Shown here piece by piece: positions 1 to 51,209 of a stretch of 64,000 bases of DNA. The translations under genes were made by a program, and so were the position numbers. The notes under the pieces are model-generated. The model was not told the origin of the DNA, ran no database searches, and was given only the letters and a program-made list of their open reading frames with translations. Position 1 is the stretch's first letter. The number at the start of each line of letters is the position of its first letter. The DNA is from Zygnema circumcarinatum SAG 698-1b (taxonomy: Eukaryota; Plantae; Zygnematophyceae): contig CM074810.1 of assembly GCA_037447605.1 (NCBI GenBank), forward strand, positions 2,328,880 to 2,392,879, given 5' to 3'.

Positions 1-3000
1 ATTGGAGGGGGGAGGGAGGGGGCGGAGGGAGGCGGCAGGGTTCGCATTTGGGGGAGAGCGGCTCTGGGAACGCTTCACGGTAACCCTGCAAACTCCGAAC
101 CCTAAACCCTAAATCTTAAACCTTAATCCCTAAACCCTAAACTCCAAACCCTAACCCTCAACCCTAAATCTTAAACCTTAAACCTTAAAACCCTAACCCT
201 AAACTCCAAACCCTAAACCTTCAACTCTAAACCTTAAACCCTAAATTCCAAACCCTAATCCTTAAACCTTGAACCTTGAACCTAAACCCTAAACCTAAAC
301 TTCAAACCTCAAACCCTAATTTCTAAACCTTAAAATTTGAACCCTAACTCTAAATCTTGAATCTTAAACAATTTCAAACATCAAAGATAGTTGAAATTTT
401 CCCAAGTTCTTAGCAACAAACTAGAGAAGTTTCATAAGGAAAACCCAAAGAAATTCTTTGATTTCCGGCAATTTTTTTTTATATGTTTTTTATTTTCTTG
501 GGTTTGGAGGGACTGTTTGCAGGTGTTTATATTGTCTTCTGATGGAGCCATTTTTGCAATTTGTCCTCTTGTTCCATTTGGAAGGTGAGATTTTTTTCAA
601 AAACTCGGAATCTTATTTTAAAGAGGACTTTTAACGAGACCACTTAGCAAAATGCCATTAAAAAATGTTTTTTGGCATAAATGTGACTTAAAGAAGGGAG
701 CCATGTGACTCTGTGGTTGTGACTTTAACGAGGGGGGGGGTTGAGTGCAGTTTTTCTCCACGGAAAGTTTTAGAGGAGCTGAAACAAAATCTTGAGGAAG
801 AAAAGAATAACTTTCGAAGGGGGAGAGGGAAAATCGGATGTGCATATCTCGCATCTCATTGGCTGATGGAAAGTTTTCCGATTCTGGATGACAAGAAAAA
901 GAGCTCGAAATCAGGAAAAGGAGAGAGCAGAGATGTATCTTCTCCCACTCTCACTATGGCTCAACGATTCGCTCTCCCTCACACCTCTCTCGCTTTACAG
1001 GTGAGTTGTAAGAGAAGAGAGCGAGTGTGAGTGGGGGGAGGGGGGGAGGGAGGGAGGGAGAGAGGGGAAGATTGGGAGAGGAGGGAGAAAGGGCGAGGGA
1101 GGTCGATAGCGAGAGGGAGAGGGAGAGGATAAGGAGATGAAGGAGAGAGAGGAGGAAGGGGAGGAGAGAGAGAGGCGGGGAGGGTGGGGGAAGGGAGAGG
1201 CAGATGGAAAGTGATAGGGAGAGAGCGGGCGGGGGGAGAGAGAGAGAGAGGCGGGGAGGGTGGGGGAAGGGAGAGGCAGATGGAGAGTGATAGGGAGAGA
1301 GAGCCGGAGGGTAGAGAGAGAGAGAGAGGCGGGGAGGGACGGGGGGGAGGGAGGGAGAGACTTGGGGAGGAAATGGCTTTGCATTTCAGATGATAGATCG
1401 ACCTCCTACCCGCACTTTCTCTACCCCCTCCCCCATGCATGAACTAACAGTTTATTCTCATGAAAATTTTGAATAATGATAATAATAATAATTTTGAATG
1501 AATTTTCCCGCAGGGTCCTCTTCCCGTGGTCGGGAAAATGAGTGAAATTTTGAATAAGCGGTTCCAAGCAGGGGGGCTTTTGACTTCCTTAATCGGAAAG
1601 GATACTCTTCTCTTTTCTGTAACTATCCAGCGCGAAGTACTCGTTCATACTTTAGGAGGAGAAGTAGAGCCAAGATGGACCAGAGAAATTCCAAGTTTAA
1701 ATTGTAGCTTAGAAAATAGGCTCATTTCTGTGGCAACAAAAGTCAAACCTTTTGAAGGGCAGGAGTGGAGACCTCCATGGGTTGTGGGAGAGGAGGGAGA
1801 AGGAGAGGAGGTGGAGGGAGAGGAGGGAGAGGAAGGAGAGGAGGGCGGGGAGGGAGATAACGCAAGTAAAGGGATAAAGGGAGGAAGTGTAAGTCGAGAT
1901 TTTCCTTCATTACTGCTTGTAGGAGTAGCTGATTTTTCTCACTTTCCTGAAGAGAGAGAGGCTGCTCCTCTCCTTCTCCTCTCAGATCCATGGCTTCCGG
2001 AGAGAGTAATATGCTCTCACGCAGGGGGAGTGGATTCTCTCACAGTAAGGCTCCTCCCTTTCTCAGATGAATATTCGGAAACATTAAAATCTCAGCCAAG
2101 AAAAGAGCCCACTTTCCTTGAACTGGAAACATGCATAGATTTAAATTCAAGATCGGAATCTTCGACGGTTTTTTCCGGAGTCGCTATTGCGGGAGACACA
2201 GTGGGAGGGACTCTGCTTGTGGTGGGAACTACCGCAGGAGAGAGAGTGGTAGAGAGGCTCACTTTGGGAGAGGGAGGAGAGGGAGGGAAGGGAGGAGAGG
2301 TGGGAGGAGGAAAGGAGGGAGTGGGGGCAGAGAAGGGAGGGCTCAGCCATGATCTTCTTCAAGGCAATCAAAGGACAAGGAACTGGGTGTGTGATTCTCT
2401 CCCTGTTTCTCTTACTTCTTCCCTCTCCTTCCCTCTGCTTCCCTCTCCCTCCCTCTCTCTCTCTGTCTTCCCACCCTTCCCTGTTTCCTGGTATTCTCCT
2501 TCTCCGCCTTCATTGTGGACCTTAATGTACATTCCTTTGCTTGGAATTCAAACACGTTTCCACGTAGAGTTCTATTCTGTGAATCCTTTTCTAAGCAAAA
2601 AAGATCAAACTCTCTCTCTGTGTCTTACTCTCCTCCCTCTCTTTCCCCCCTTCTCCCCCCTCCCCTTCCCCTCTACCTCTACCTCTACCTCTACCTCTAC
2701 CTCTACCTCTACCTCTACCTCTACCTCTACCTCTACCTCTACCTCTACCTCTACCTCTACCTCTACCTCTACCTCTACCTCTACCTCTACCTCTACCTCT
2801 ACCTCTACCTCTACCTCTACCTCTACCTCTACCTCTACCTCTACCTCTACCTCTACCTCTACCTCTACCTCTACCTCTACCTCTACCTCTACCTCTACCT
2901 CTACCTCTACCTCTACCTCTACCTCTACCTCTACCTCTACCTCTACCTACCTCTACCTCTACCTCTACCTCTACCTCTACCTCTACCTCTACCTCTACCT

Positions 3001-4187: not shown

Positions 4188-4899
4188 CGTTACTTCAGTC
4201 TGTACAGGTGAGAGGGTGTATGGGGTGAGGGAATAAGGAATGTCTGATGTCGACTCTGACGGGGATTCAGGTGTGCATGAGGTACTCTATAGGATGATGG
4301 GGAGGGAGAGAGAGAGAGAGGAGAGAGGGATAGCAACATGTCAGAAGTCCTGTAACATACGGACATACTCATCCATTTAGAACAGCCATGCCGTCATCCA
4401 AAAGGCATTCAACGAGACAAAGAAAAAGATGACTCTTTCCTGCCTGCTTCCCTCCCTCCCTCCCTCCCTCCCTCCCTCCCTCCNNNNNNNNNNTCCACGT
4501 ATGACACTGCTCCAATATACAACGCCTCCCCTCTACCTCTCTCTCATATCTCTGGTTCCTCTCCCTTGCCCTCCCCTCTCCCCTCCCCTCCCCCCCCCCC
4601 TCTCCCCTACCCTCTCCCCCACCTCTCCCCCACCTCTTCCTCCCCTCTCCCCCCCACCTCTCCCCTCCCCCCACTGCTCTCCCATCGTTCCCTTTCCCAT
4701 CTCCTTCCCTTCCCTATCTCCCCTCTCTCTCCTCACCTTTTATCGACACCTGATTCAACACCAGCACATACATCACAATGCGTGCCCCTAAAATCCAAAC
4801 CCTAATCTCCACTGCCTCCACTGCAATCTCCCCTCCTCCTATCCTAATCCTAACTCTAACCTTAACCTTAAACGCTCTCCACATCTCCACATCCACATG

Positions 4900-7148
4900 T
4901 CACAACTGGTCAGGGTTCATGATCTTCGGTCTCGGCCCCATTCTGGCAAAAGCGATTTCCTGCTTGTTCCGACTCGTGTGCACTATATGGAAGCCCTGCT
5001 GCTTCAGCACCTTTATACATTCTGCCTTCTTAACTGCCCCATCCTTCATCATTCTCTCATGGAACTCGATCAATATCTGGTCGGCCGGAATGGGCCGGTT
5101 TCTAAAGTCATCCGATAAGCAGATGTCCATCTCCACTCCCTCCACATCCATCTTCAACACATCCACCCACTTGTGTTCATGCATGCACATGAAGGTCCTG
5201 AACCGTAGAACTGCGGCTTGGAAACCTCCGTCTTTGTAGTTAACCTTCAAGTCATCCAACGCTACCGCCGTTTTTGACTGAATTTTGGGATTTTTGGACT
5301 GGAAAAAGGTGATCACTCCGTCCGTTGCGGCCAACCCTAACTGTTGGAACTTGAACTGTTCCGGAATCTCGTCCTTGTCGTGAACCTTGAAATTTCCTTT
5401 GACCTTTTCGGTTGTGATGGTCGGGTCGAATGCATGGACCTGGACAATGAAGAGTCGGTGAGCGAGCTAGTGAGAGAGAGAGAGTGTGAGAGAGAGAGTG
5501 AGAGAGAGGGCGAGAGAGAGAGAGACGGATTCCACGATGTCATGCTATACAGAGTTTAAAAAGAAGGCCCTTTCAAACCCCGAACCTTTTTGATTGTGTT
5601 GGAAGTCCACAATCAACTTCTTGCAAACTTAATGCGATCAATCAACCCGAAATAGTCCCAAGAAATATTGGAGCCTTACCGTCAACCCTTTCTCCACCAA
5701 GGCGTTATCAAAACTGACATCTCCTCCAATTCCGAACGAATACACAACCCCTCCTTCCTCTAAACGATCTCCACATAGAATCCACGCTCCGTAGTTATCG
5801 GGAGGCCGACCCCCAATAAGTTGAAGTCGACAAGTGCTGGATGAAGGTTGAATTCCGGACTGACTCCCGGCCTCCTCACCCTCCCCTACCACTTCAGCTT
5901 CTAATTCACTCCCTACTGTTGAAGATGTGAAGAAGCTTCCCACCATTCGAAAAACATTCTTGATAGCATCCGAAGCAGTCTTCACAGGTTTTTCGGGAAT
6001 ACTTTGCATAATTTGCCGTTCTGTCCTGCAGCGGTCAACAAGGAACATGTAAAAGGTAAGACTTTGCTTTACAATCATTGAATCTGTTGATTATTGTCCC
6101 TCCCCACCTCCCTCTATCTGACTACATCCTGAAGATCATAAAGTACTGGGTGGCAACTATTATCCAAAAAAAAAACAGCATTCAAAACAGTTGTGACTGC
6201 AACTGGAGGGATTCTAGATGAGTCAGAAGACCCTCCCCTCACCCTCGCTCCTGCTTCCTCTCTCTCTCCTTCCGTCTCTGTAACCGTCACACCAACCTCC
6301 ACCCTCACTAAATCCTCGTCTTCTTCCTCTTTTACCTACGCTTATTCTCCAGTCCTTTTCTCAATCTGTCTGACCTTATATCTCTCTCCCTCCCCCTCCA
6401 TTTTCTCCTCTCCATCGCCCTTCTCCTCCTTTTCCCCTCTGCTTGTCCGTCCCTCTGCTTTTCTCTCTCCAAATTTTCGCCTTGCTGCTCAAATAAATTA
6501 GCTATACTATCTAACCTTAGCAGCCCACGAAACAGCAATAATCCAGAACCAAAAATGCCCTAGGCTTTGAGATCCAGCAACAAAGTGACCACTTGAAAAA
6601 ATAAAATGAAAACTAACGTGAATACAGATCTGCAACCTAACTCCAACCTTCACTCTAAAACCATTATCAAAAACAACAAGAGGGATAACCTCTACCAGAT
6701 CCTGCACGATCCATTCCATAACTTGCAGTACAGTGTCTCCCTCCCTCCAACCTATTCCTCTCCCTCTACCACCTCCCTCACTCTACGACACCTCTCCTTC
6801 TACCACCTCCCTCACTCTACGACCTCTCTCCCACTACCACCTCCCTCACTCTACGAACTCTCTCCCTCTACCATCGTACCTTGCCAAGATCCCATCCGTC
6901 GCCGCTTCACCGCCTTCTTTCTCTACCTCCGGATTCTCTCCTGTCACCCTCTTCTCATACCTCAATCCGAGAATTGTGAGCTGCACAATGAGAGCGATCA
7001 GAAAGAGAATATGCCAAGTGCTGCAGCAGGCTCCCTTCCCCTTCTTGGAAGCAGATCCGCCTCCGCGGTACACCTCCTGCCTGGAGCCCCCCACGAGGTT
7101 CCAGCGGTGAAGGCCCGGAGAGCGCGGGGAGACTCTTGGAACCGCCAT
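4900..7148 (-). CDS. Type II membrane SAM-dependent methyltransferase (FkbM / Methyltransf_22, METTL24-like). Exons 7148-6880, possibly small unresolved exon(s) at 6.1-6.7 kb, about 6083-5680, 5439-4900
   Basis: N-terminal transmembrane segment HILFLIALIVQLTILGL. Core motifs YGAWILC, VYSFGIGGDVSFD, VHAFDPT, QLGLAATDG, VDVLKMDVEGVE and QILIEFH. Confidence 0.8.
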
Positions 7149-8291: not shown

Positions 8292-10383
8292 ATGGGGAAG
8301 GGCAGCGGGTGCATGTCGAGTTCGATGAAGAAGGCGCCGCCCACGAGCGACGAGAAGGTCGACGTGGCGGCTGATGTGGCGGCTGACGTGGATGCTGCGG
8401 CAGTGGCGCCGGTGGCGGTGCCGGCTGCTGACGCGGCGGACGGGAGTGCCGACGTCAAGGCGGAGGGCGCGCCGCCTGTGGAGGTGACGGAGGCGGCGGT
8501 GGAGAGTACGGGAGAGGCAGGTGAGGGAGGGAGGGAGAGGCGGAGAGGGAGGGAGTGGAGAGGCGGGAGGAATGGGACTAGGGGGGATGGAGTGGATGGA
8601 CAGAGGGGTGGTTAGGGAGGAAGGGCAGAAATGGGAATGGGGGGAGCGAGTGGGAGAGAAAGAGGAGAGAGGGGGAGGGGGGGGTGTGGAATGAAGGAGA
8701 GATAGAATGAGGGTGGAGAGAGGTAGGAGAGGGAGAAGGGGGGACGGAGAGGGGAATAGCGAGGGGGGAAATGGAGAAGAGAGAAAGTATGGGGAGAGGA
8801 CATGTTACCCTGTTTTTTGGTTTTTTTTAACCAAATTAATCCGGAAAGTAATGCTCCTCCTTCTTTCAAGAGATCACCACCTCTTGTACAGGTGTCAGGG
8901 CCACGTTTGAAAATATATTTTCCTCATTAGATCCTTTCGCAAGATATCCTTTGATCCAATTACCTTATAACCAGCATTAAAGGTTCTTTTTTTTTGGTGT
9001 GATATTTATCTGCAGAACCTGTGAAGCCCGCTGAAGAAGTAGCTGCCCCAGTTGAACCTGCAGCTCCGTTAGTTAAAATCTACATTGTGTAAGTTTTTGT
9101 ATATCTGCTCTCTTTTTGCTATCTCTTTCGACTCCGTTAATAAATGGACTTTCTTCGCTGGCCTCTTCGCAATGATTTTTTTTTTATTCTTCTTCTTTGT
9201 TTGTCTATTTATTGTTATCATTTCAGGTTTTATTCCATGTATGGACATATTGCGAAGCTGGCAGAGAAGATCAAGGAGGGAGTGGACAGTCTTGAAGGAG
9301 CTGAAGGAGTCCTATTTCAGGTATAAAAAGATATATACTTTTCTGTCCTTTCTTTTGTGGTTCTTTTTGAGCTAGTTGGAGGGGGTGAGAATGCGTTGAT
9401 GTTGCAGAGAGGGAGAGAGATAGAGATAGAGAGAGGACAGCTGAAAATAAAAAATGCAGATTAGCATGCTGGTAGGTAGAGTGAGCTGCAGTGGGAGAGA
9501 GAGATAGTGAGTTATTAAGAGAGAGAAAACACAGAGTGGCACATAGAAGTGTTCAAAGAGAGCAGCTCATTCCTATCTCTCATCTACCATACGAGCGATC
9601 CCTTCTCCCAACCCATTTTCCCACAACTTCGAACCCATCTTTTCCGACTCCTCAAACCTCGTCCATCTTCACCCCCTATCTACACCCCTTTCCCTACCCT
9701 ATTTCCCACCCCACTTACACCCCATTTGCACCCCATTATCAGGTGCCAGAAACTCTCCCGGAAACCGTTCTCCAGAAGATGGGCGCCCCCCCGAAACCTG
9801 CCCATATTCCGATCATCGAACCCAAAAATTTGGTCGATGCGGACGCTGTATTGTTCGGAATTCCGACCCGTTTCGGAATGATGTGCGCTCAAATGAAGGC
9901 GTTCTTTGACGCGACGGGCAGCCTCTGGCAGTCGCAGGCACTGGCGGGGAAGCCGGCAGGGTTCTTCTTCAGTACGGGGACGCAGGGGGGAGGGCAGGAG
10001 ACTACAGCGTAAGTTGGAGGGNNNNNNNNNNCTCTCTCTCTCTACCCCTCTCTTTATCCATCTCCCCAATATCTCCCTCCCTCTCTCCCTCTCTCCCCCT
10101 CTCCCCCTCCTCCTCCTGTCCATCTCTCACTCCCTTCCCTCTCCCTCCCTGCAGGATGACTGCCATCTCCCAGCTGGCCCATCACGCCATGCTCTTTGTC
10201 CCCGTGGGGTACACCTTCCAGGGCCTCTTCAGCATGGACGTGCATGGCGGCTCTCCGTACGGCTCCGGAACATTTGCAGGAGATGGAACACGCGTTCCGT
10301 TGGATTTGGAACTGGAACTGGCAATGCATCAGGGAAAGCTGATGGCTGGTGTGGCAATGAAGCTGAAGAGAGGAGCATATTGA
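8292..10383 (+). CDS. FQR1-like: Flavodoxin-like NAD(P)H:quinone oxidoreductase (FQR1-like 2/WrbA) with acylation-type N-terminus. Exons 8292-8520, 9016-9088, 9227-9320, 9743-10008, 10155-10383
   Basis: MGKGSGC start, VFYSMYGH, FGIPTRFG, STGTQGGGQETT and GGSPYG motifs. Splice phases are consistent. Confidence 0.95.
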
Positions 10384-10876
10384 GAGAGAGGGAGAGAGGG
10401 AGGGAAGAGTGGGAGAGAGGGAGAGGGGTTCTCGAGTTGGTTGCATAACGGCGAAGGCAGTTCATCTGACTTTGCTGCTTGTTAATTATTAGGGTTGGAT
10501 TGGGATGTTGAAGGGAAGGTTATGGTGAGGAGGTAGGTGGAATTGGTGAAGTTTCTTGGCTTTAGCCTCCTTTAGTGAGGGGAACGAAGAGGAGAGGGAG
10601 GGAGAGAGCTGTGAGGGAGTGAGGGAGGGAGGGAGATAGGGAAGGAGGAGGGAGGGAGGAATTAGAAGGAGATGATTTTTAGGTAGAAATCGGAGTTGAT
10701 CTGTTAGAGGTATAGCATGAGGGAGGTCCGTAGAGCATAGCAACAGGTTTAGGGTTAGAGTCGGTCATTTGTGGATCCCGCCATGCGGTTCGCATATCTA
10801 ATAAGTGGTCCTGTTCGTGGTTAAGACTGTCTGGGATTTATTCTACTTGTGTCCCCCCTGAAACCCTTAACCCTCG

Positions 10877-10940
10877 AAACCCTAAAACCCTAAAACCCTA
10901 AAACCCTAAAACCCTAAAACCCTAAAAAAAAAAAAAAAAA
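10877..10940. repeat. (AAAACCCT)n telomere variant (TTTTAGGG), 6 units, followed by A17
   Basis: Read directly from the sequence. Confidence 0.9.
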
Positions 10941-11050
10941 TTCTTCGTTAGGTAAGTTAAAGAGAGTAAAACTGGTGCTAAGACAACGTCGCCCTTCTTT
11001 ACCTTGTGAAATTGTCCATTTTTGCGCAGACGAAAACTTTTTCACGACAT
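10941..11050 (-). pseudogene. Bacterial RnpA-like N-terminal fragment (reads with TGA=Trp)
   Basis: ATG at 11050 gives MS(TGA)KSFRLRKNGQFHKVKKGDVVLAPVLL, resembling the RnpA start motif RLRKNxxFxKVxKKG. The frame runs into the poly(T). Confidence 0.4.
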
Positions 11051-11114
11051 TTAGTTGCAAGAAAACTCTTAAATTCATTTAAGGAAAGCTAATAACAATT
11101 AGCGGCATTTATCT

Positions 11115-11210
11115 ATGAAAAGGACCTGACAACCGAAAAAAGTTGAACGCTTGCGTAAGCACGGATTTCGGCAAAGGTCGGCCGATGGGGAGTAAGTGCG
11201 CGCTAATTAG
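11115..11210 (+). pseudogene. rpmH: Bacterial ribosomal protein L34-like sequence, decayed, with in-frame TGA at the Trp/Tyr position
   Basis: MKRT(TGA)QPKKVERLRKHGFRQRSADG matches the L34 consensus MKRT[WY]QPxKxKRxRxHGFRxRMSTADG. The C-terminus is eroded by deletions and stops. Confidence 0.75.
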
Positions 11211-11879
11211 TTCTTTATGAAATCTTTATAGAAGAAAAATAAAAATAAAAGAGTTTAGATCAACATAGCTTTTTGCGGATTCACGAGTTTCGTGAGTACT
11301 AACATTGCTTGCTACAAATAGAGGCAATTTATGTTATTACTTACTTTGTACTTTGAAAAAATGATTTCAACAAGTACCAACAACTTCACTTTCTGTTTCT
11401 GCTAAAGCAAGATGTTTTTTTCTTGGGAACGCTTCTCAGCAAAAGAAAGACGACGAAATTTCTCTAAAAGAACATTCTTTACGTAATTACTTCCAGCTAC
11501 TTGTAAAGTTTTTTCTCAAAGATTATCAAAATAAAAAACGAAAGAATACCTAAAATACCTTTTTATGAATAAAACAACCAAGGTTAGTAAAAGACAAGAC
11601 GGTACAAAAAAACAGTGATATTAACCAAATTCAATTTTAGAAAAGAATTTCTATCCCTTAACCTCGACCCCGCCCCCCCGAACAGCAGAACCAAACTGGG
11701 CTGCAACTGGAACTGGGGCAAAAAAACTGAAACTGGAAACTGAATTTCGGCTACAATTTCTCTATGTGAGCTGTACGGAAATTGAAATTGAACAGCCGTA
11801 CTGCATGTGTGACCTATTTTTTGTCGTTTCTGAACACGGAAACGCCACAGAAGGGCGACGTGCCAAGCAGCCGTATGGT

Positions 11880-16157: not shown

Positions 16158-18871
16158 TCAATAAGCGATACCTCCCGATAAACCGTTGCCATCATGAATG
16201 AAGCTCTCCGTGAGCCAATAACCGTCCCAATTCCCTCCCACTCGCTGATTTGAATGGGAGAGGGAGAGAAAGAGCAAGAAAAAGGAAAGAAAAGGCACAA
16301 AAAAAAGGAGGGAAAATTCAGATTGCAGTTCAGGTAACGAATTGGCTGATTGCGCTTCATTTCTCTCCATAATTTCCCCCTCCCCCTCCACCCATTCTCC
16401 CGCTCTCTCTCTTCCTGCCCCTCTTTCAACCCTGTCTCTGTCCCTCTCCCTCGCCCCCTCCCTCTCTCCCTCTCCCTCCCCCTCCCTCTTTCCCCCTCCT
16501 CGCCCACTCCCTAGCCCCCTGGCTCCCTCATCGCCCCTCTCCCTCCCTTCCCCTCCAACTCCCCCTCTCCTCCCCCTCCCCCAACCCCTCCTCGTCTCCC
16601 CCTCCTCCCCCTCAACATCCCTTCCCCCTCCTCCGCTCCGCTCCCTCTCCCCCTCTCCCTCTCCTACCCCTCTTCTCCGCCTCCCCCACTACCTCCCTCG
16701 CTCCCTTTCCCTCTTCCCCCCCCCCCTCGCCTTCCCCCTTTCCCTCTCTCTCCACCCCTCCTAGATTTCAAGTTCGTGTTGAGATGTACCTGAACCACAG
16801 TGAACTCAAAGGTCTCCTCCTCTGAAGGCCGCGCCCCCCGAATCCAAACACGCTGCTTGAAGCAATGCTGAAATTGACACAAAACATATACAAAAATAAG
16901 TAAAAAATCCAAAAAAGAATGCAAACATTCCCAAGAAAGCTTCAAAATTAATTTCGGATTTGGAGGTGGCCTGCATTCCACCGAAACGGATTAAAGGAGA
17001 GGAATGCGAGGGAACAAAAGAAAGAGGATTAGAAATACCTCGTTCACATTGAAGCTACTCAATATGCGATACTCCTTGTAGCTCAATAAAACGCGGTACG
17101 AAGAATGATGAAAAATTCGACGGAACCGCTCAAACTGCAAGAGTAGACAACATTGAATAAATGCTCTCTCTATTTACAATGAAACCTCCCCCTCCCCCTC
17201 CCCCTCCCCCTCTCACCCTCCCCCTCCCCTTCTCCCTCTCCCCCTCCCCCTCTCCCCCCCTGNNNNNNNNNNCCCTCTTCCCCTCCCCTTCCCCCCCTTC
17301 CCCTCTCCCTCTCCCCTTCCTTCTCCCCGACCCTTGTGATTTCTAGTTTGAATTTCAAAACTTCACCTGTCCGAGGTCATAGCGAGGTCCAAAATAAGTC
17401 GAACGCTGAAATGGGTCAAATCCTGCAAACTGGGGCCCTCCAATACTGCCAAAAAGTTACAAACAAAAACTCCTCCACTTGATTCAACGAATCACAAAAT
17501 GCCTCTCAAAAAAACCTTAAGAAAGGCTTCGAATAGAAATTGGAGGTGCCAAAAGACCTAAGATTCGGTAACTAGCGCACCCTAAAGCCTAGAAAACATA
17601 AAAGCCCAATAAGCATTACCCCATTTAACCCTTTTACATCAAATTTAAAGGGCATTTTAAGTGGGGACTCTCTAATTACCTCCATGAGAAGTTTAAATTT
17701 TTATGAGGTCAAACATCGTGCTCACTCTGTACATGACTTCAACTCCATGGTCAGGATATGGAAAATCGTTGTTCTTGAGTGCTGCCAGCTGGCACAGAAT
17801 GGCCTCCTCACAGGAGTACTGCAGTGCATTCCAATAGAGGCAAAATGTTGAGAGGGGAGGGAAGGGAGAGGAGAGAGAGAGGGACAGAAAGAGACGCAGA
17901 GAGAGAGGGGAGAGGGAGAGAGAGAGGGAGAGAGAGTGGGGGGAGAGTGGGGGGGAGAGAGTGTGGGGGAGAGAGTGGTGGGGAGAGCGGGGGGGAGAGA
18001 GTAGGAAAGCGTGAGGGAGAGGGGGATAAAAAGAGAGTGAGAGGAGAGCGTGCGTGAGTGTGAGGGGAAATAAGGGAGGAAGGAAAAGCGAGAGCAGGAG
18101 AGAGAGAGAGAGGGGCGGGAGAGGGGGAGAGATAGGGGGGAAGATTGCAGGAGGAGGGAGGAAAGGACCAGTTGAGGGGAGGGAAGTGGATGCGAAGGGG
18201 GAATGAAAGTAGAGAGTAGCGAGCGAGAGATAGCGGAGAGAGGAGAGGAGGGAGAGAGAGCGAGAGACGGTAGGGAAGAAGGGCATTCATAAAAAGTAAA
18301 CGAACTGATCGTAGTTGAAATGATTAGAAATTAGACATTTGATTAAGTTCATTTCATTCCACGGATTTCAAACGGAAATGTAGGAGCATGGAACGGGGCC
18401 CACCTCAAAGCTTGGCCCTGGAGGCTTCTGACGCCCCTTTGCCCTGAAAACCCCAAAAAAGAACGCAAGGAGAAAATAAAAATAAATCAAAAGTAGACAT
18501 AATTAATTCTCAAACCAACAAGGCATTCAAGAATGCAATTTGGTAACCTTCAAATTATACAAAAACGAAAGAATGAATTATCGGTAGAAGAAATTATCAG
18601 AAGCTCACCACACCGAAGGCAGAAAATCAGGAATTTCTCCGCAAACTGGAAGAATTCCGTTCAATTTTCGCAGTTTCAGTTTTACGGAACTACTTTCCGA
18701 CGAAATTTGCTTCCGCATTTGTCGTCTGAGGCCGTCCCATTGAGAAACGCTCCGACTTCCACCGCTTGACCTCATATGTTGAACATTTATTTGAAGATTT
18801 TGGCGTCCAAAATGCGATGAAGAGACCCTAAATTCTGTGCTGGAATGAATCTGGCCACCTGCATAAGCCAT
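16158..18871 (-). CDS. Conserved plastid-targeted protein (NTF2-like/DUF4864-related). Six or seven exons
   Basis: Spliced: transit-like exon, then WAKGRQKPPGPSFE|YSCEEAILCQLAALKNNDFPYPDHGVEVMYR|FAGFDPFQRSTYFGPRYDLGQ|FERFRRIFHHSSYRVLL...|HCFKQRVWIRGARPSEEETFEFTVVQ|RVGGNWDGYWLTESFIHDGNGLSGGIAY*. Confidence 0.85.
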
Positions 18872-50780: not shown

Positions 50781-51209
50781 GTGAGTCAATTTTCTTCTTC
50801 ATTTTTTACTTAAACATGTAGGAGTGTGCTTCAGGAAGCGATCTTCATGCTATGAATCAATGTCTCTGCAAATGACCCCTACCACTTCCCTCTGCTTCCT
50901 TCTGTGAAGGTTGAGTCTAACAAAACTCCCTTTCCTCTGTCCACGTCCTCTGCTTCCTCTCCTCCCCATACCCTCTCCCACCTCCCCCCCTCCCCTTTCC
51001 CACCTCCCTTTCCCCTTCCCCCTTCCTCTCTCCCCCTACCCCTCCCCTTTCCTCCCTCCCTACCCCCTTCCCCTTTCCTCCCGCCCTCCCACCTCCCTCC
51101 CTCCCTCCCNNNNNNNNNNNNNNNNNNNNNNNNNNNNNNNNNNNNNNNNNNNNNNNNNNNNNNNNNNNNNNNNNNNNNNNNNNNNNNNNNNNNNNNNNNN
51201 NNNNNNNNN

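Follow-up and report, generated by a model that had tools for sequence, protein, structure and literature searches.

A likely scrambled 777-bp insert of bacterial DNA, probably from a relative of the Mollicutes-related endobacteria, in a chromosome of the alga Zygnema circumcarinatum

How does the beginning of a bacterial ribosomal protein gene come to lie in a chromosome of the alga Zygnema circumcarinatum SAG 698-1b, and from which bacterium did it come? The question is raised by a short AT-rich block in a stretch of contig CM074810.1 (64,000 nucleotides, analyzed as a whole and called the window below), which is draft eukaryotic DNA of about 50% GC, rich in GA/CT low-complexity tracts and interrupted by 13 runs of N. 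An earlier note on this DNA had read the block as a fragment of a mollicute using genetic code 4 (TGA read as Trp), either inserted into algal DNA or brought in by a contaminant read during assembly. The core of that idea, a code-4 mollicute fragment inserted in algal DNA, is supported here by a scrap of an ABC-ATPase gene, by the linkage of this gene to rpmH on a metagenome contig (L121) and by ribosomal protein L23 on a sister contig (L122), while the rnpA gene, the terminator and the Shine-Dalgarno word proposed along with it are unsupported. We consider it very likely that the block is a genuine dead insert of bacterial DNA, and probable that the donor was a code-4 mollicute related to the Mollicutes-related endobacteria (MRE; 'Candidatus Moeniiplasma'). 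Taken as a whole, the explanation that we favor on balance is a 777-bp non-functional, scrambled, repair-type insert of DNA from such a mollicute.

The argument starts from two pieces of the block that resemble bacterial genes:
11115..11192, plus strand: 5' scrap of rpmH (ribosomal protein bL34), codons 1-26, with TGA at Trp-5 (11127-11129); Pfam PF00468; similarity ends at about codon 23
11405..11620, minus strand: scrap of the N-terminal membrane part of a mollicute-type ABC-ATPase protein; core match 11411-11578

The rpmH frame is exactly as the earlier note had described it, running ATG (11115) AAA AGG ACC TGA (11127-11129) CAA CCG and onward to give MKRT-TGA-QPKKVERLRKHGFRQRSADGE, followed by TAA at codon 27. 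It holds the bL34 N-terminal motif (MKRT-[FYW]-QP, a basic stretch, then HGF) in the form MKRT-(TGA)-QPKKVERLRKHGFRQR. The frame was searched in the databases as its pieces around the TGA. The 21 residues after the TGA (11130-11192) alone match Pfam Ribosomal_L34 at profile positions 6-23 (E 1.4e-5, 25.4 bits at a cut-off of 25) and NCBIfam rpmH_bact (E 0.001), as well as many bL34 chains of solved ribosomes, again over positions 6-23. A profile made from 120 bacterial L34s scores 29.2 bits here, aligned over positions 1-23 of its 44, and has no other match in the six frames of the window. Judging from these scores, the similarity to L34 is not due to chance. The C-terminal half of the protein (G-R-x-V-L-x-x-R-R-x-K-G-R-x-x-L, in an intact gene of about 44 codons) is absent, and since the profile alignment ends at position 23/44 with no frame continuing it, the object is, on this evidence, the first half of rpmH, a gene fragment and not a gene. 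A full-length rpmH decayed by three TAA stops was considered and rejected, since the alignment simply ends at position 23.

The second piece was recognized by comparison with L121. In a tblastn search of the six frames of the block against L121 and L122, the minus strand at 11411-11554 matched positions 5565-5422 of L121 with 44% identity over 48 amino acids (48.9 bits), and when every frame of the two contigs was compared with the whole window, with correction for composition, this match ranked first (E 4e-7), ahead of L34. Two further N-terminal members of the family, P0122 and P0123, were present in the word-indexed database. The profile of the three members (L121, P0122 and P0123) reaches 34.0 bits on 11411-11578 (independent E value 6e-12), its sole match in the window. 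The frame (11620-11405) is open for 72 codons if its single TGA is read through, what survives of the N-terminal part is about 56-72 codons, and the scrap is 44-49% identical to the MRE-type contigs. The ATPase domain (Walker A, PF00005) is absent from the window.

The ABC scrap is invisible to Pfam and PDB, which suggests that its similarity is specific to the L121-type family; Pfam ABC_membrane recognizes neither the scrap nor the N-terminus of the L121 protein. The L121 gene itself (open reading frame 4300-5811) has 504 codons, of which the C-terminal part matches ABC_tran (E 4e-10), the N-terminal membrane part being too divergent for Pfam. In this analysis the family was encountered solely on AT-rich metagenome contigs in which TGA is a Trp codon.

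What kind of bacterium carries these contigs? A metagenome scan with the nine-residue L34 start and TGA fixed at codon 5 returned L121 and L122 and no other contig; a stricter pattern, in which 19 of the first 21 L34 residues were fixed, had no match in the metagenome collection. Both contigs have a GC of 0.25-0.28 and an intact 42-codon L34 with TGA at codons 5 and 38, which in L121 begins MKRTW(TGA)QPKK. Their long genes are open only with TGA read through (6-8 TGAs in gltX, three in fusA and nine in the ABC gene), and by their sequence both derive from a code-4 bacterium. L128, the contig of P0123, has a GC of 0.27 and reads through TGA too. The closest relatives of the scraps, on L121, L122 and L128, all use code 4. 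The MRE-type L34 (L121 3062-3187, L122 5627-5752) has an unusual middle, HGFLESNRKRK... as compared with HGFRxRMxTxxGR, and its second TGA-Trp lies in the C-terminal GRWKLTV.

L121 and L122 are 87% identical over 2.4 kb. The identity extends across rpmH, a membrane-protein gene and gltX (L121 3062-5811 with L122 3389-5752), and the contigs differ upstream of rpmH, where L121 has the ABC gene and an RluD-like gene and L122 has rplD-rplW-rplB-fusA; gene order appears fluid in this lineage. The L23 of L122, which is free of TGA, gave the following identities:
Mollicutes bacterium UO1: 72%
Candidatus Moeniiplasma glomeromycotorum: 67%
two Mycoplasmataceae metagenome-assembled genomes: 65-66%
endosymbiont GvMRE of Glomus versiforme: 64%
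a sequence filed under the mycorrhizal fungus Cetraspora pellucida: 62%
next best group: at most 48%

Since this L23 groups with the named MRE and L121 is 87% identical to L122, we assign both contigs, on sequence, to the MRE. Bacteria of this group have been described from arbuscular mycorrhizal fungi, among them 'Candidatus Moeniiplasma glomeromycotorum' of Glomeromycotina (bioRxiv 10.1101/2021.09.13.460061; PMC12306442). The contigs that match both scraps resemble MRE in being AT-rich, in reading TGA as Trp and in an L23 that is 64-72% identical to that of named MRE. Unlike MRE, the window holds dead scraps and no bacterium, and the host is an alga and not a fungus. Identity to the MRE-type contigs is no higher than 44-49% for the ABC scrap and 15/23 for the L34 scrap, so that the donor would be related to the MRE clade without belonging to a sampled lineage. 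Extra MRE loci fetched around L23 (L123-L127) lack both rpmH and the ABC gene, and nothing further in the block matched them.

The two scraps are tied together by the arrangement of their genes on L121, which had been fetched solely for its rpmH start and not for its ABC gene. On this contig the ABC gene, the RluD-like gene and rpmH follow one another on one strand within 2.7 kb, with 2.2 kb from the ABC gene to rpmH. If the scraps had come from unrelated donors, the chance that the best relative of the ABC scrap would lie on the same 6-kb contig, in a genome of about 0.6-1 Mb, would by our own estimate be below about 1%. The ten Arg codons in both scraps are only AGG, CGT, CGC and CGG, never AGA, which is weak evidence for one donor. 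The position of the ABC gene near rpmH on L121 and this shared codon habit make a single donor region, with rpmH and the ABC gene as neighbors, the simplest account. In the window both scraps are cut short, point in opposite directions and are separated by 215 bp, whereas on the donor-type contig the genes are neighbors on one strand, suggesting that the insert is scrambled.

Did the TGA of the L34 scrap mean Trp to the donor? Codon 5 encodes Trp in 122 of the 122 L34s compared, with TGA in L121 and L122, and the first 18 residues of the scrap are 15/18 identical to the L34 of these two contigs (15/23 over 23 residues). A scan of 185,579 species genomes for MKRTW-QPKK, with either TGG or TGA allowed at codon 5, gave at least 120 loci, and among the 120 matches listed all have TGG and none is from a mollicute. 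The listed matches come from Patescibacteria, Solirubrobacterales, Chloroflexota, Pelagibacterales, Bacteriovoracaceae, Abditibacteriota and others; the best identity to the L34 scrap among them is 19/26 residues, none exceeds 70% at the DNA level, and the 120 listed loci have no match to the remainder of the block. The loci L007, L013, L015, L020, L052, L054, L056, L099 and L104 are contigs of 'uncultured Gammaproteobacteria' metagenome-assembled genomes with a GC of 0.33-0.41 and a Patescibacteria/Microgenomates-type L34 (MKRTWQPKK..HGFLKRM); their titles may be wrong.

These counts bear on the main rival explanation, in which the donor was mixed or not a mollicute: the L34 scrap would come from a code-11 bacterium (Patescibacteria, Chloroflexota or Pelagibacterales), its TGG would have mutated to TGA after insertion, and at most the ABC scrap would be mollicute-like. 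Several observations weigh against a mollicute donor. Ordinary code-11 bacteria share the MKRTWQPKK start with TGG, and, by our own count, few transitions within these 26 codons would create a stop, TGG to TGA being one of them. Residues 10-23 of the scrap match code-11 L34s at 9-10/14 positions (L012 10/14, L101 9/14) against 6/14 for L121. The GC of the scrap is 0.51, with seven CpG, and 14/26 of its third codon positions are G or C against 6/26 in L121. In L121 and L128 a Gln codon (CAA) stands opposite the TGA of the ABC scrap, so that this TGA is no evidence for code 4 and only one TGA is left at a Trp position. The ABC-family link consists of three metagenome sequences, only one of which is tied to MRE, via its sister contig. 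About half of the insert (10941-11114, 11193-11404 and 11621-11654) is without assignable match, and the donor sequence that survives amounts to about 80 codons, of which the L34 part is not closer to the MRE-type contigs than to code-11 bacteria. Because 120/120 listed genome L34s use TGG and residues 10-23 are nearer to code-11 L34s, the TGA alone would not have shown code 4.

The reading of TGA as Trp in the earlier note, for which best hits to code-11 bacteria would have been damaging, thus meets divided evidence: the listed genome matches are all non-mollicute with TGG, and TGA-bearing starts were found in the metagenome collection solely on MRE-type contigs. A code-11 donor would also leave the linkage of the matched ABC gene to rpmH on L121 as the coincidence estimated above. 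No TAA or TAG occurs within either homologous stretch, and named MRE loci freely use the CGN and AGG Arg codons found in the scraps. A less derived MRE relative could fit the L34 scrap, MRE-type L34 being unusually divergent mid-protein, although none was found. On this balance a code-11 source of the L34 scrap seems unlikely to us, and the TGA at codon 5 common to the scrap and L121/L122, together with the linked genes, argues well, though not conclusively, for a donor in which UGA encoded Trp.

If the donor was a code-4 mollicute, how does its DNA sit in the chromosome? The AT-rich block is real, with a GC of 0.33 in 10941-11654 compared with 0.53 in the left flank and 0.48 in the right; its end, which the earlier note had put at 11570, lies at 11654, about 85 bp farther. 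Together with an adjoining tract of (CCCTAAAA)6 and poly-A, and bracketed by a direct repeat, the block forms an apparent 777-bp insertion at 10878-11654. Besides the two scraps, its parts and edges are:
10864..10877, no strand: left direct-repeat copy CCCTTAACCCTCGA, a candidate target-site duplication or microhomology; sole match in the window at up to 1 mismatch
10878..10940, minus strand: telomere-type tract inside the repeat bracket, (TTTTAGGG)6 preceded by about 15-19 T on the minus strand; the plus strand reads (CCCTAAAA)6 and poly-A
10941..11114, no strand: AT-rich filler, GC 0.35, holding the 'rnpA-like' minus-strand frame; no family, profile or contig match
11193..11404, no strand: AT-rich filler, GC 0.30, holding a 6-bp hairpin (11281-11295) and the GAGG/ATG at 11331; no family matches
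11621..11654, no strand: AT-rich tail of the insert, assigned by composition only
11655..11667, no strand: right direct-repeat copy CCCTTAACCTCGA, one base shorter than the left; sole match in the window at up to 2 mismatches

The flanking repeat is CCCTTAACC(C)TCGA, identical at 13/14 nt, and its right copy starts exactly at the end of the AT-rich sequence. The same host word thus stands at both edges of the insert, each copy unique in the window, which gives moderate support for a target-site duplication. Direct repeats of 13/14 nt lying 300-1500 bp apart occur in the window at about the chance rate (about 30 expected), and the weight of this one comes from its position at both edges only (a naive p of about 1e-3, judged post hoc). 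The six perfect units inside the insert, each of 8 nt and together occupying 10880-10927, are the sole multi-copy CCCTAAAA array in the window. At the start of the window (77-390) lies a degenerate array of 7-nt telomere-like units (CCCTAAA, CTTAAAC, CTCCAAA and others) with a 14-nt super-period, a unit type that differs from the 8-nt CCCTAAAA. An (AACTGG)n-like word occurs at 10309-10322, about 550 bp to the left of the insert, and at 11703-11716, about 40 bp to its right, so that the two flanks look like the same kind of host sequence. Low-complexity tracts, both GA-rich and CT-rich, are very dense throughout the window, with hundreds of copies per repeat family.

A block so sharply unlike its flanks in composition, in a draft scaffold with 13 N runs in the window, could in principle be an assembly artefact, that is, a piece of a contaminating bacterium, or of an MRE-carrying fungus, joined into the algal scaffold. 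In the genome of a living contaminant rpmH, an essential gene of 44 codons, would be whole; here the resemblance to it extends no farther than codon 23-26, and the scraps are inverted and 215 bp apart, compared with 2.2 kb on one strand in L121, with about 2 kb between them missing. Twelve of the N runs are of 10 bases and one is of 100 bases (51110-51209); those closest to the insert are at 10022-10031 and 17263-17272, so that none falls within 850 bp of either junction, and both edges carry the same host word. Given the truncated rpmH, the scrambled scraps, the bracketing host repeat and the lack of N gaps, the contaminant read that the earlier note had offered as an alternative is, in our judgment, very improbable.

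The edges themselves admit a different explanation, in which the unit is a mobile or retro-copied element of the host, for example a copied subtelomeric transcript ending in TTTTAGGG repeats and flanked by a target-site duplication, the bacterial DNA having entered earlier and elsewhere. The 13/14-nt flanking repeat would suit such an element, and the minus strand of the unit does end in a T-run and (TTTTAGGG)6 right against the repeat. Yet the window holds no second copy of the insert, the insert has no terminal inverted repeats or foldback, no frame of the block gives a reverse-transcriptase or transposase signal, and the flanking repeat is only modestly significant. We regard a host element, too, as quite unlikely. 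The block also has no match among plasmids and phages (blastn). A Pfam search of all 28 of its stop-to-stop pieces of at least 20 amino acids found L34 as the sole match, as did NCBIfam, and scans of the block with Rfam and for tRNAs, promoters and terminators returned nothing. Since nothing in the insert is expressible as protein, the insert is, as far as its sequence can tell, without function.

Other bacterial features had been proposed within the AT-rich fillers. The divergent frame that the earlier note had called RnpA-like does exist, as MS-TGA-KSFRLRKNGQFHKVKKG on the minus strand at 11050-10941; its identity as RnpA drew no support from Pfam, NCBIfam, profiles or protein search. Pfam and NCBIfam (including RnpA PF00825) gave nothing for it even at E of up to 10. 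Two RnpA profiles were made from RnpAs encoded downstream of rpmH in the fetched loci, 49 for the first and 65 for the second; the first had no match to the frame and the second scored -2.6 bits (independent E value 1.8). A full HMMER search of 1.84 billion representative proteins with this piece found no RnpA, its single match being a tandem-repeat junk protein (P0001, of 747 amino acids, in which a unit of about 68 amino acids recurs about 11 times in tandem; it draws spurious Pfam matches and is probably a translated satellite). The protein atlas gave no usable match, and the frame matches nothing on the mollicute contigs. A composition-preserving shuffle test against RnpA N-termini was favorable, with 0/500 shuffles reaching the observed mean score; in a sliding-window null over the real window the frame was not exceptional. 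A real rnpA lies directly downstream of rpmH and on its strand; this frame is placed upstream of the rpmH scrap and on the other strand, and on the MRE-type contigs no rnpA follows rpmH. The TGA in this frame has no homologue to align. Two further candidates were set aside: an S4-domain (RluD-like) reading of the frame against the RluD-like gene of L121, which was not better than shuffles, and, as a candidate rnpA, the plus-strand frame at 11269-11550 (94 codons in code 4), of which the 3' two-thirds are antisense to the ABC scrap and which has no matches.

The terminator-like hairpin of the earlier note, TCACGA-GTT-TCGTGA, is likewise present as a sequence, and its 6-bp stem at 11281-11295 is followed by GTACTAAC and not by a T-run; a scan of 10850-11700 for rho-independent terminators found 0 sites. 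The GAGG word that had been likened to a Shine-Dalgarno sequence drew no support; the ATG at 11331 opens a frame of only 24 codons without relatives.

How could such a mosaic have arisen? In the explanation that we favor, a chromosome break in the alga would have been repaired with filler DNA, leaving a single dead 777-bp insertion at 10878-11654 in nuclear DNA. The filler would be a scrambled mosaic of short pieces from the code-4 mollicute and a telomerase-type (TTTTAGGG)6 tract with its T-run. The minus strand runs from foreign DNA through the T-run into the telomere-type tract, as would result if telomerase had lengthened a free end of the captured fragment before it was rejoined. The flanking 13/14-nt repeat is the trace expected from a staggered break or from microhomology-templated repair, and before insertion the uninterrupted host site would have read ...CCCCCCTGAAA-CCCTTAACCCTCGA-CCCCGCCCCCCC... 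We infer that one donor, living within the alga or close beside it, supplied the DNA, that one repair event placed it and that telomerase took part.

Fossils of this kind, dead pieces of bacterial genes in eukaryotic chromosomes, are already known, and what is unexpected here is the donor. Nuclear copies of mitochondrial and plastid DNA (NUMTs and NUPTs) and the transfers from Wolbachia to insect nuclei are filler DNA captured during double-strand-break repair. The Zygnema insert resembles them as short, non-functional, often scrambled foreign DNA of foreign composition amid normal host sequence; it differs in its donor, which is not an organelle and is not known to reside in this host, and in that a telomere-type tract is included. 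Interstitial telomeric repeats inserted by telomerase at break sites during repair have been described for primates and rodents. With these the insert shares a short perfect telomere-type tract inside a chromosome, beside filler and bounded by a short host duplication, while its unit is TTTTAGGG, its tract abuts foreign bacterial DNA via a T-run and the part played by telomerase is read from the sequence only. The locus is a clean example of a break-repair insert joining a telomere-type tract to foreign DNA.

The value of the insert lies in its donor, from a group described only from mycorrhizal and related fungi. To our knowledge, MRE have so far been known only from inside fungi of the Glomeromycotina and Mucoromycotina. 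A full-text literature search found no report linking MRE or MRE DNA to an alga. It is possible, though less likely than not, that the alga or a recent ancestor was in close contact with, or host to, an MRE-lineage mollicute reading UGA as Trp, whose DNA entered the germ line repeatedly. If the origin proposed here is correct, the scraps may mark a past intimate association of a relative of the land plants with MRE-type bacteria or with their fungal hosts, and in the case of such repeated entry they would provide a datable record of an alga-mollicute or alga-fungus-mollicute association near the base of the land-plant lineage.

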